Assembly (NCBI RefSeq): GCF_021869535.1
Contig: NW_026262604.1
Coordinates: 4,092,001 to 4,156,000 of the forward strand
DNA length: 64,000 nt
Reading direction: 5' to 3'
Source: Mytilus californianus
Taxonomy: Eukaryota
Translations under genes and position numbers: made by a program
Shown: positions 22,927 to 26,564 of the stretch, piece by piece
Layout: every line of letters begins with the position of its first letter
Numbering within the stretch: the stretch's first letter is position 1
Notes under the pieces: model-generated
Databases searched by the model: none
What the model was told of the DNA's origin: nothing
What the model saw: the letters and a program-made list of their open reading frames with translations, nothing else

Positions 22927-23297
22927 TAATTACCCACTTGATAATGTCGTCGGTTATCATTGAAACTATGTTAGACTATTGGTGAAGTATTAAGGTTTCA
23001 TTCCAAACACGATCAGACACTTGATGATGTAGTAGGGTACCTTTCTAAACACGATTAGATACTTGATGTTATTCCACTATATGTAAATATTGATAGCTAA
23101 ACGAACATTTCATTGGTTGAGACTGTCCCATGTGATATTTAACAAAACATCATATTCCCCTCTGAAAATCATATTCAATTGTCATATTCCCCTTATTCGA
23201 ATTTCTCAAGATTATACTAGAGTTATCCTTCTTTGAACAAAAAATGATGAATTGAAAAGTCTAGAGAGCTTCCGAATATTTTTGTTTGTAAACAAAA

Positions 23298-25396
23298 ATG
23301 GCCAAACGATTTCATGTGGCAGACGACGATGAAATTGAAGAATTGTTACAAAACAAAGATTCACTAAACACAAAAAAAAGTACTGCAGTTGCAGTTAAAT
23401 GTTTCCGACATAATCTTGAGGAGAGTGGGAGGGAAAACACAAAATTTGAAGAGTATGAACTTTCAGAACTCGACGTTGCACTGAAGAGTTTTTATGCTGG
23501 TGCTCGTAAATCTGACGGAAGTTTGTTCAAGAAATCGGCTATTCAAAATGTCAAATACGGATTAAAAAGATACCTACATGAAAAAAGAAACATTGACATA
23601 AACAAGGACAATGAATTTACCAAGAGCAATTTGATATTCCAAGCAGTTAAGGTTGATTTAAAGCGCAAGGGCTTTGCTAAAGTTGATCATTATCCTGATA
23701 TTTCTGAGGAGGATTTACAGAAACTTTACAGTGGTGATACCCCTGTTTTGACGTCAATACTCCTTATGGTCTCCAGTTCAAAGTTTGGTTTGAGTTAATG
23801 CTTTTCCTGTGTAGAAGAGGTCAGGAAAATTTACGTACAATGACCAGAGATACATTTCGTGTGAAAAAAGATGCAAGTGGTACGAAATATGTTTACCAAA
23901 ACAAGGATGAACTAGACAAAAATCATAGGGCCAACACTGATCCATCTGACTCAGTTACAGAAGGGAGGATGTACGAGAAGAAAGGTAATTTTCCATCTTG
24001 CTATTTCTTATTATTTTTGTGCATATATACATGTATTATAAGACATTTGTAAGAAGATGTGGTATGTCCAATGAGACAACTCTCCACTCAGCGACCAAAC
24101 AAAATAGAAGTTTACAACTATAGGTAACTGTACGACCTTCAACAATGTGCAGAACCCATACTGCAGAATAATCCTTGCTTGGTAGATATATTGTTTAGTA
24201 ACAAAATGTATAAATTTATGAATAGAACAAAAAAACAAATATACTTTATATATGAATTGGCATAAAATACATGAAAAATGCATTATTGCTGAAGAAAAAT
24301 TACTATACGCGCACAAGAATATTAAAATAAAAACATTAGAACAGATCTTTGACTGCGTTTTTTCATCACAGAGTCTATAAATTCAATTCAATCATGTCAA
24401 TTATGATATTTCAAAATAAAGAAATTACAGAAAATTTATTTAAATACATGTATAACTGTCAAAAGATAATTAACATACAGAATCAGTAAAATTACATAAA
24501 TTTTGTCAGATGGTTTCTAATGAAATTGCATTCATTGTAGTTTTAATGTCTAATATGCTTTATTAAATTGCTATCAGAGAGAAAAAAAAACAAACAAAAT
24601 CTAGTATTAAATATTTTTATTAAATTTTTCAGGTGATTTGAAATGTCCAGTAGCTTCTTTTGAAAATTATATTTCAAAATTGTGTCCAGATCTTGAAGCT
24701 TTATGGCAAAGACCAAAAGCATCCTCTGATGTGGGTGAATCTACATGTTATTGCAAATCTCCTCTTGGGAAAAACACTCTGGCTGGTATGATGTCTGAAA
24801 TATCTCATATTGCTTTATTGTTTATGGCATATACCAACCATTCCATTAGAGCTACCAGCATCACAGTAATGGACGTAGGAGGGGTAACAGGTCGTCACAT
24901 AATGAAGGTGTCTGGTCACAGAAGTGAAAATTCATTAAAATCCTACTCAAACCGTGTTAGTGATAAAAAAAAGAGGGAAATATCTGATATTTTGAGCAAG
25001 GCAATCTCTACAAATAAACAGGAGCATTCATCAGAAATTGAAAATGTAGTTGTTGAAAAAACTTCTGAAGTACTGCAGCCTATTCCACCACAGGAACTTT
25101 TAGAACTGTTTTCAAATGATATGGAACTGGAAGAAGTTAATGAAAATGTCTTGAGTGATATGAATCTAATGCAGGGTTTGAACACAATTAATAAATCATG
25201 TGATATGAAAGACAATCGTACACAACCATTGCAAGAAAGATGCATGAATGTCCAAATGAATAAAACCAATCAGGTTGAGTGTTGTGGGTCAAGAGGATTT
25301 TTTTCCTTTGTTCCAAAAAAAACAATACCTTTTGACACTTTATCACTTTTTTCAATTACTCATAAACATACATGCACATGTAGCAAAAACATTTAA
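23298..25396 (+). CDS. Tyrosine recombinase (DUF3504/Crypton type), 2 exons, one -1 frameshift
   Basis: Exon A is 23298-23984 (donor GTAATT, phase 1) and exon B is 24633-25396 (acceptor ttttcag). One T is missing in the run at 23746-23749. Restoring it gives ...PVFDVNTPYGLQFKVWFELMLFLCRRGQENLR...KGDLKCPV...YTNHSIRATSIT...SGHRSENSLKSY, about 483 aa. The R, H-x-x-R, H and Y catalytic positions are present. Confidence 0.88.
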
Positions 25397-25579
25397 TACT
25401 CCAGTATTCACATACTTTATTACATGACAATCATACACATGTATTTGTTATAACTTTTTATTTTGTTTTGTTGTTATTGTTGAAATAAAAAGTTGCAGTT
25501 ATCTTTTATTGTTGTATTATTTTCATTGTTTTCATATTCCATTTCAGGAAGACAAATTAAATGTAGATAGTGGAATAAA

Positions 25580-25724
25580 ACATTCATTTCCCTTGCCTTC
25601 AGGAAATATGAAGATTTGTTCACCCTCGAAAAGTCATATTTCCCTCGGGCGATGCCCTCGGGAAATATGACTTTTCTCGGGTGAACAAATCTTCATATTT
25701 CCCTCAATCAAGGGAAATAAATGT
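25580..25724. repeat. 145-bp imperfect palindrome at the 3' end of the recombinase element
   Basis: The arms AAATATGAAGATTTGTTCACCC-TCG-AAAAGTCATATTTCCC-TCG-GGC and their near-complement are centred on loop GAT at 25651-25653. Outer arms: ACATTCATTTCCCTTG / CAAGGGAAATAAATGT. Confidence 0.95.
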
Positions 25725-26564
25725 ATAATGTAGAAATGTACCTTTAAAAACTCGGGAAATCACAAGACTATGTAGTAAGGCATCATCAAATTGGTTTTCT
25801 TATTTTTCATGTACGTGCAAAAGTTTTTGGCTCAATATTTTGTTGTCGCAGCACGTGTTTATATTTAAAGCTATGTCATTGGTTGACAACGTGCAATTAT
25901 ATCTTACAATAGATTCATTAAATGAATAGTTTACAAAAATTTCGCAGAACAATATACCGTAAACCAAAGGTGGAGCGATAAGAACCACACCACACATCTA
26001 GTCAGCTTATGTTGTCTTTTCCAAAGATATACGAATGCAACTTGTTCATGCTAACTATACACATTTTCTTAAGGATTTTTGCTACTCTTGTTTTTTGTTT
26101 TTTTTTGCTTTCGTAGGATATCTTCTATTCAAAATGTATTTTTTTTGTTTCCTAATCTTTTTTTTATAATTTTATAACATATAGTGCAAAAAGTCATTTT
26201 GAAAAAAAGTATCTATAACGGTCTTTTATAAAAAGCACATATTTAGAATTAATAGAACGAAAATTTAGGTATTAGATTTATGTCATCTTTATACGCATTC
26301 TACACTCACAAACGAAAATTTAGGTGTTAGATTTATGTCATCTTTATACGTATTCTACAATCAAATAAAATCAAACTAGCTGTTTATATGTAAAAAAATC
26401 ACCTAAATTCCCCAGGTTTATTATTTATTTTCTCTTTGTACCTGTACACATCCGGCGAGAGAAATCTTTTGAATTTGTATTGATTATGAACAGTTAATGT
26501 ACTAAACAATAATGAAATCTATTATATTTCACTAATTGTTTTTCACTCTTTTTCTTATTCAAAG

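Follow-up and report, generated by a model that had tools for sequence, protein, structure and literature searches.

A Crypton-type tyrosine-recombinase element of Mytilus californianus with a structured 3' end

What kind of mobile element carries a short inverted repeat at both ends and a long palindrome at one end only, and what does the palindrome do for it? The question is raised by positions 23069-25727 of a 64,000-nucleotide stretch of Mytilus californianus DNA (NCBI RefSeq assembly GCF_021869535.1, contig NW_026262604.1, positions 4,092,001 to 4,156,000 of the forward strand; hereafter the window), where a tyrosine-recombinase gene lies between such ends. An earlier note, made by a model from the letters of the window, had described a tyrosine-recombinase element there and had proposed its palindrome as a site of recombination, resolution or replication. 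We identified the segment as one defective copy of a Crypton-type element of approximately 2.75 kb which encodes a DUF3504 tyrosine recombinase. The best explanation as a whole, in which the ends also serve as the recombination site, is that the segment belongs to a recently active Crypton-type DNA transposon of the DUF3504/CryptonA kind, the copy in the window being inactivated; we consider this explanation probable.

Boundaries and ends of the element

The window was compared with three public DNA runs. In one of them, X2, which is independent of the assembly, a 251-nt contig joins position 23068 straight to 25728 and skips exactly the 2659 bp of the element (23069-25727, + strand). This contig is fully accounted for by the two flanks (176 + 75 nt, with zero letters between the sides) and represents the empty allele, which reads acttgatg|atgtag. 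The insertion is thus polymorphic and left neither a target duplication nor a footprint. Depth in X2 was 32 for the empty-allele contig and 228 for the element body, implying about seven copies. In the 1.65-Gb genome, about seven full-length copies with common ends were found at 96-100 % identity, in addition to truncated ones. The first base of the element is the T at 23069, and 28 copies with unrelated flanks start with 5' TTATTCCACT and finish with ...AAATGTATA (also given as ...GGGAAATAAATGTATA), so that both ends are exact. The boundaries proposed earlier, and the rejoining of the flanks without a target duplication, were thereby confirmed to the base.

The left terminal inverted repeat, TTATTCCACTAT, occupies 23069-23080 (+), and its exact complement, ATAGTGGAATAA, is found subterminally at 25567-25578 (+), as had been read before. 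The 3' end thus consists of the inverse of the 5' end, a single A (25579), an imperfect palindrome of 145 bp (25580-25724, centre 25652) and a terminal ATA (25725-25727, +) between the palindrome and the crossover point. The lone A on one side against ATA on the other is a conserved asymmetry ('A versus ATA'). The length and centre of the palindrome and its place outside the right repeat agree with the earlier description, but the word 'near-perfect' does not hold, as self-complementarity is approximately 84-86 %. In 70 non-redundant copies, the first 10 bases of the element are kept in 64-70 and the last 12 bases are invariant in 68-70. The 12-bp repeat by itself is not significant in the 64-kb window (2 matches against 0.83 expected, equalled by 17 of 100 shuffles); its validity rests on conservation in the family and on compensatory change, and not on the window statistics. 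Autonomous copies have ...CACTAT/ATAGTG..., and most short copies have ...CACTG(C/T)/GCAGTG... at the corresponding bases.

When folded as single-stranded DNA, the palindrome reached -58.2 kcal/mol (z = -13.5), a value equalled by 0 of 200 shuffles. Within it, the motif TCATATTTCCC is present four times with alternating orientation, at 25601 (-), 25634 (+), 25660 (-) and 25693 (+), and two 8-bp segments are non-complementary (TTGCCTTC at 25593-25600 and TCAATCAA at 25704-25711). Two direct copies of the motif TCATATTCCCC are also present in the left end (23150-23192, +; 23150-23160 and 23182-23192) and are candidate binding sites for the recombinase or an accessory protein. Nine matches to TCATATTYCCC were counted in the window, with 2.25 expected in 64 kb, and six of the nine fall in the two ends of the element (two in the left end and four in the palindrome).

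The recombinase and the short derivatives

Exon 1 of the recombinase (23298-23984, +) contains a QRICH1-like N-terminal domain and the region of the first catalytic Arg (CRRGQENLR), and exon 2 (24633-25318, +) contains GKN, NHSIRAT, SGHRS and LKSY, which correspond to the catalytic K, HxxR, H and Y. The 648-bp GT...AG intron between them (23985-24632, +) has boundaries that were read from the sequence and fit the ...MYE..G(N/D)..CPV... of the homologues. An alignment with 7 relatives shows all five residues (K, H, R, H and Y) to be invariant. Searches were made with each exon on its own; in Pfam, the pieces gave weak matches to QRICH1 (N-terminal), DUF3504 and Phage_integrase, together with weak chance-level matches to FST_N and DUF7039, and in PDB sequence searches they gave chance matches only. 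DUF3504 on exon 2 alone (E = 7.9e-6) stays under the cut-off because the domain is split across the exons. Six full-length homologues (approximately 470-510 aa) were scanned; DUF3504 exceeded its cut-off of 29.7 in five of them, with 32-45 bits, and Phage_integrase exceeded its own in two (P0056 and P0068).

At E ≤ 0.001, the recombinase family comprises 3311 cluster representatives, and the relatives include proteins of Mytilus coruscus and M. galloprovincialis (91-95 % identity), Saccostrea, Tegillarca and a sea anemone. No open reading frame (ORF) for a reverse transcriptase, RNase H, Rep/helicase or DDE transposase was found in the 2659 bp; the coding content consists of the two recombinase exons, with one intron, and short antisense ORFs. 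Judged by its sequence, the recombinase places the element with the DUF3504-type (CryptonA-like) Cryptons, and the assignment to a tyrosine-recombinase transposon of Crypton type made earlier is supported by the catalytic residues and by DUF3504 in the homologues. At least 150 six-frame matches to the catalytic half of the recombinase, at 30-100 % identity, were observed on all large contigs of the genome, which contains many Crypton lineages; in several of these the open frames are long and reach 474 aa.

Two lesions inactivate the window copy. One T is missing from the T-run at 23746-23749, which shifts the frame of exon 1, and a 108-bp deletion after 25318 removes the natural C-terminus. 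All three DNA runs show an extra T behind 23745, and the run counts five T in the copies L002, L004 and L005. In sibling copies the T-run is complete and the exons are open, and these copies end with ...FVPKFENCSVNVTVNNYQAN; the frameshift-repaired recombinase that had been suggested for experiments is therefore not needed. A motif at the extreme C-terminus, P-x-F-x-N-C-x-V-x-I-N-Y (L004:3700-3775), is conserved in the recombinase family and was lost from the window copy by the 108-bp deletion. RNA reads were absent from 24191-24725. In the intron, a segment of approximately 100 bp (24084-24190) has a contig depth of 6,000-54,000, compared with about 30-230 elsewhere in the element, and appears as a nested repeat of very high copy number. 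Outside the element, positions 22800-22906 of the window showed a contig depth of 0.25-2.3 million in all three DNA runs, and RNA reads from both strands were abundant there.

When the genome was searched with the terminal 16-mer, 407 occurrences were found, against 4 for the reversed control, and the insertions are dispersed over all chromosome-scale contigs. Many copies are short, with nothing retained beyond about 100 bp at the left end and about 185 bp at the right. Among 60 sampled 16-mer loci, the left end was found in 45 at a distance of 426-632 bp upstream, in most cases near 546 bp, and the rest are almost all diverged or truncated versions of this short element. The copies of about 546 bp are non-autonomous derivatives which share both ends with the autonomous element. 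Since they keep just the two ends, only the ends are needed in cis.

These loci also bear on the origin of the palindrome, for which an unrelated fold-back MITE (a miniature transposable element with inverted repeats), inserted by chance at the 3' end, could be considered. Fold-back elements exist, and most palindrome copies in the genome have no recombinase gene, which the earlier note had named as a sign of an independent MITE. That part was observed. However, such copies keep the same left end and subterminal repeat and are thus derivatives: every scored palindrome adjoins the same subterminal repeat in the same register, no solo-palindrome class was seen among the 60 loci, and the left end lies upstream at the distances given above in 45 of them. 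The empty allele, moreover, excludes the palindrome together with the rest of the element, and relatives in other species have their own version at the same place. A chance MITE is thus already contradicted by the data, and the palindrome belongs to the end of the element, as had been proposed.

Some of the short copies show further features. L068, L089 and L116, which are 545 bp long, contain an internal ATATTCCACT some 103 nt in from the left end; the most frequent short derivative may therefore be composite, made of a left-end fragment and then a shorter complete element. L062, L065, L077, L098 and L104 share identical right flanks (atgtctaatgagaga...), and L062, L077 and L104 also have a common left flank (...atgggata). 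These shared flanks are themselves high-copy repeats (133 and 378 first-look candidates), and this sub-family seems to have been amplified inside a larger repeat. A paralogous empty site was sought for L062 and none was obtained, both flanks being high-copy repeats. A divergent copy on C99 (L020/L022) was set aside as old, decayed and uninformative on selection.

Symmetry of the palindrome and the joined ends

The DNA around ten related proteins from other assemblies was examined, of which two (L126 and L127) lie on contigs too short downstream to be judged. A palindrome of 110-170 bp was found 400-700 bp downstream of the last recombinase exon in Saccostrea cucullata (L121; 141 bp, self-complementarity 90 %), Tegillarca granosa (L124; 111 bp, 93 %) and four loci of ENA assemblies (L122, 168 bp, 94 %; L123, 118 bp, 93 %; L129, 147 bp, about 88 %; L130, about 125 bp, decayed). 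Directly 5' of the palindrome, L121-L124 have GG(T/C)ATAATAA-A. The terminal triplet after the palindrome is ATA in L121, L122 and L124 and TAA in L123, which is the exception among the five lineages with a readable register; the 'A versus ATA' asymmetry is present in the other four. Upstream of the gene, L121 and L122 carry a left end that matches (TTATTATACC), in which a TCATATTYCCC-like motif is also found.

Between lineages, the palindromes are only about 0.5-0.6 identical, and each is 0.80-0.93 self-complementary. In a six-sequence alignment, 94.7 % of cells were paired, compared with 75.6 % in shuffles and 40-53 % in slid controls. Both sides had changed in 28 of 53 pairs (12.1 ± 2.2 in shuffles; 0 of 500 shuffles reached 28), so that the symmetry is kept across lineages with compensatory changes. 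G-T type intermediates were almost absent (48 double changes against about 5 G-T type single changes) and the constraint therefore acts on Watson-Crick symmetry at the DNA level.

This covariation weighs on the proposal that the palindrome serves expression, as a 3' end, terminator or poly(A) module, a bidirectional promoter or a source of hairpin RNA, with the AATAAA of the subterminal repeat as poly(A) signal. In favor of it, several lineages conserve an AATAAA immediately ahead of the palindrome and another at the extreme end, and in Starships the juxtaposition of 3' and 5' ends alters recombinase expression (2026 preprint). However, the nearly pure Watson-Crick covariation is unlike that of an RNA structure. 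The non-coding derivatives, which far outnumber the coding copies, also retain the full palindrome and subterminal repeat, indicating that both are needed in cis for mobility. We regard a role in expression as improbable.

A flip/flop of the palindrome is the signature expected of hairpin-primed replication or of site-specific inversion. It was sought in 88 copies and none was found: the asymmetries all have the same orientation, and the central triplet is never inverted. One fixed orientation (0 of 88 opposite) argues against hairpin-primed replication, re-templating of the arms and inversion, and the hairpin end or replication role suggested earlier is left unsupported.

Several of the foreign loci deserve separate mention. 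The oyster and mussel palindromes (L121:6428-6568 and window 25580-25724) are 80 % identical and both end with ...AATAAATGTATA, and the exon-2 proteins of L121 and the mussel element are less similar (approximately 43-45 % identity); the cis site may be more constrained than the protein, or the ends may have been transferred horizontally or recombined. In L123 (6882-6910), the palindrome is followed by TAA+TTATTACCTTCTTAATAT, which is like the left end of L122 (TTATTATACCTCATTAATAT), and this may represent either a junction of the head-to-tail kind or an element inserted next to the remains of a left end. The palindrome of L122 (6216-6336) contains a 41-bp tandem duplication of one arm segment (ATATTGCCTGCCTCGGGTGAACAAATCGTCATGTCACCCTCA).

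Joining right end to left end gives ATAGTGGAATAA-A-palindrome-ATA|TTATTCCACTAT. In this arrangement the 12-bp repeats become the outermost arms of a single palindrome of about 173 bp, which integration splits 12 bp from its outer edge. Joining lengthens the stem of the fold in Mytilus (from -58.2 to -66.6 kcal/mol) and also extends it in the Saccostrea and L122 elements. The junction can also be read as GGGAAATA-AATGTATA|TTATTCCA, that is, two imperfectly inverted half-sites with an 8-bp AT-rich spacer between them, the right border of which coincides with the element boundary.

The insertion target of the window copy consists of ...gatacttgatg on the left (23057-23068, +) and atgtagaaa on the right (25728-25736, +), both halves being present in the empty allele. 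The 70 non-redundant copies gave the target consensus aaATAAannATW|RTRTYcaAt, a loose signal of about 8 bits extending from -12 to +9, in which the right-flank preference is like the bases with which the element itself begins. At +1, 56 of the 70 copies have A or G, and no target duplication was found in any of them. Targets resemble the joined ends (AA..ATA|nTATT) on both sides of the crossover, with 4.84 matches of 10 against 3.07, and 4.63 against 3.80 (0 of 2000 shuffles each). Shifting the left flank by one base against the right end did not improve the match. Right flanks were also considered as the left ends of resident copies, and this was rejected, as the similarity stops after about 10 nt. 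A 22-mer of the head-to-tail junction has 12 matches in the genome at ≤1 mismatch, four of them exact, and the control has 0. At G000:C57:14096915-14097368, five junction matches with one mismatch each are spaced by exactly 108 bp; they look like a tandem array with joined ends in its unit, possibly a satellite born from a junction. Joints that go back from 25699/25705 to 23149 were examined as candidate circles and rejected as mislaid reads between TCATATTYCCC copies.

The target and the gene both separate the element from rolling-circle transposons, to which the earlier note had compared its layout. If the ends were of Helentron/HINE type, the recombinase would be captured cargo, and a Rep/helicase encoded elsewhere would move the family. 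Helentrons encode Rep/helicase(/endonuclease), insert at TT and have 5-10-bp palindromes, their subterminal repeats being 38-60 bp away from the 3' terminus (Thomas et al. 2014, PMC4067079), and HINEs are common in bivalves, oyster Cg_HINE being an example (PMC7492417). The order of parts is indeed the same as in Helentron, HINE and DINE-1 elements (5' inverted repeat, 3' subterminal inverted repeat, palindrome, 3' end), and so are the lack of a target duplication and the abundance of short non-autonomous copies in bivalves. The mussel element, in contrast, encodes a tyrosine recombinase and no Rep/helicase ORF, inserts at TW|RTRTY and not at TT, and has palindrome arms of 55-70 bp (about 70 bp in the window copy), a left repeat that is terminal and a right repeat 149 bp from the end. 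Furthermore, the position and orientation of the recombinase relative to the repeat and palindrome are constant in at least five lineages with proteins of approximately 40-60 % identity; such an arrangement points to long co-evolution and makes gene capture unlikely. We concluded that the likeness is one of layout, and a rolling-circle origin of these ends is very unlikely.

The subterminal repeat and the palindrome are plausibly the cis-acting recombination site of the element, possibly used in folded form. For the palindrome as a recombination site, which had already been suggested, the joined ends, the likeness of targets to them and the compensatory evolution make a plausible case. The recombinase would excise the element as a circle, for which the 12 head-to-tail junction matches of the genome are indirect support, and the joined ends (...GGGAAATA-AATGTATA|TTATTCCA...) would form the site at which a strand is cut and rejoined, at ATA|TTATT. 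The TCATATTYCCC motifs of the left end and of the palindrome arms may bind protein and bring the ends together, the palindrome may act as a cruciform or hairpin, and the joined site would then recombine with look-alike sequences in the genome. The palindrome most likely works as folded DNA, since Watson-Crick symmetry is kept along its whole length with the sequence itself free to change and the unpaired features fixed in position.

A serious rival to the folded form is an array of two-fold binding sites in double-stranded DNA. Here the same Crypton would have a palindrome that never folds and that serves as a platform for the recombinase or a host factor, assembling the synaptic complex as lambda attP does with its arm-type sites. 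In favor of such a platform, the palindrome contains four to six TCATATTYCCC-like motifs whose orientation alternates, and the left end adds two more. Two units of lox/FRT type can also be made out, at 25584-25611 and 25692-25723, in each of which inverted 11-12-mers enclose a non-complementary 8-bp spacer; extrusion, in addition, is itself a proposal. However, the compensatory changes span nearly all 53 paired positions, including stretches between the motifs that are wholly different between lineages, and the fixed positions of the 'A versus ATA' asymmetry and of the 8-bp asymmetric segments are explained more easily by a recognised structure. With these points on either side, we hold the binding platform to be rather doubtful, and yet an alternative to be taken seriously.

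The folded form can be put in a more specific way. After excision, the joined palindrome of about 173 bp would extrude as a hairpin or cruciform, or fold as a single strand, and the recombinase would read the stem of the 12-bp repeats and the 'A versus ATA' loop; one strand would be exchanged at ATA|TTATT and replication would resolve the product, giving a eukaryotic counterpart of the attC sites of integrons and of the CTX-phi attP hairpin. This model would explain the sharp ends, the absence of overlap identity and the conservation of symmetry without conserved sequence. We propose it tentatively, as one possibility.

Several points weigh against the recombination site and its folded use. 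Target and junction lack the strict identity over 6-8 bp that tyrosine recombination of the classical double-strand type would need. The junction half-sites are only weakly inverted (GGAAATAA vs GGAATAA), and less so in the oyster lineage. The joint expected of a circle (...AAATGTATA|TTATTCCAC..., 25727 to 23069) was not listed in the contigs or in the RNA sample, where contigs drop rare forms and about 6 % of one raw RNA run was covered. Among the relatives, L128 has no clear palindrome, and the sea-anemone locus L125 is ambiguous, with a differently placed palindrome. The symmetry could also come from two-fold protein binding or from gene-conversion-like repair without extrusion, and binding, the position of cleavage and the folded state are all inferred from sequence. 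As to L125 (Actinostola), its palindrome (2163-2305) is 143 bp long, GC-rich and 97 % complementary, and is located 3.7 kb upstream of a fragment of a related recombinase. Within 15 nt after it comes GATTGGCT, a motif that bivalve left ends contain about 60 nt inward, and the arrangement may be an unsplit joined-end site or another placement of the crossover.

Comparison with known systems

Cryptons are the least understood class of eukaryotic DNA transposons, and gave rise to several conserved animal genes (ZMYM2-4, QRICH1 and KCTD1). They are usually said to lack definable ends, no cis-acting sites are known for them, and they have not been shown to pass through a circle. The mussel family offers base-exact ends, a polymorphic insertion with its empty allele, naturally intact siblings, hundreds of mini-elements which define the minimal cis requirements, and a structured site that is conserved across bivalves with built-in compensatory 'mutants'. 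These features make recombinase binding, the position of cleavage, circle formation and the need for DNA folding directly testable.

Animal Cryptons have been described as lacking terminal repeats (Kojima and Jurka 2011, PMC3212892), and a direct repeat of a few bp is given as the only hallmark of Cryptons (PMC8969392; PMC13465315). Searches of the full-text literature, with the Repbase and Dfam catalogues outside their scope, found no Crypton with a terminal palindrome or a comparable end architecture, which agrees with the earlier view of an under-described system. The element shares with Cryptons of the CryptonA/DUF3504 type (Goodwin et al. 2003; PMC3212892) just one tyrosine recombinase, whose catalytic domain is DUF3504 and whose N-terminal domain is QRICH1-like, and the absence of a reverse transcriptase, which separates it from DIRS, Ngaro, PAT and VIPER. 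Further common features are the lack of a target duplication, microhomology between element ends and target, non-autonomous derivatives that outnumber the autonomous copy and a presumed circular intermediate. The assignment as CryptonA-like follows from a DUF3504 catalytic domain without a GCR1_C C-terminal domain, and was made from domain content. The mussel lineage differs by its 10-12-bp terminal/subterminal inverted repeat, its 3' palindrome of 110-170 bp and its at least 400 copies. Its terminal repeats, which the description of CryptonA does not include, are a point of novelty and not a ground for exclusion. Novel in this Crypton lineage are its terminal site, which is structured and conserved, and its large family of derivatives that are non-autonomous.

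Among eukaryotic tyrosine-recombinase elements, the Starships of fungi also move via a circle, formed at flanking microhomology, and their circular intermediate has been shown (2026 preprint). They differ in their DUF3435 'captain' recombinase and in being giant cargo elements, and a long terminal palindrome is not described for them.

In bacteria, conjugative transposons of the Tn916 type are excised to a circle by a tyrosine recombinase and insert without target duplication into AT-rich targets resembling their joined ends. With regard to such targets, which mimic the joined ends with no strict overlap identity being required, Tn916 is the closest analogue of the mussel element, from which it differs in being bacterial, in having no long terminal palindrome and in carrying Xis and a conjugation module.

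The closest mechanistic analogues would be integron cassettes, with attC and IntI, and the attP hairpin of CTX-phi, used by XerCD. In both, a tyrosine recombinase acts on an imperfect palindrome of approximately 60-150 nt at the 3' end of the mobile unit. As in the mussel element, the unit opens with bases that form the inverse complement of what immediately precedes the palindrome, and integration splits the palindrome off-centre because the crossover is placed within the outer arm. The structure is kept while the sequence diverges, with small conserved unpaired features, and a circular form (presumed for the mussel element), head-to-tail arrays and sharp boundaries without overlap identity are also shared. 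The mussel element, however, is eukaryotic and has its recombinase, of the DUF3504 type and not IntI, inside the mobile unit; it has no attI platform or promoter, its targets are dispersed and loose (about 8 bits), and its folded substrate is proposed from sequence features. The likeness to attC is thus a resemblance of mechanism and not of membership, and if the folded substrate is true, hairpin-directed tyrosine recombination would not be confined to bacteria.

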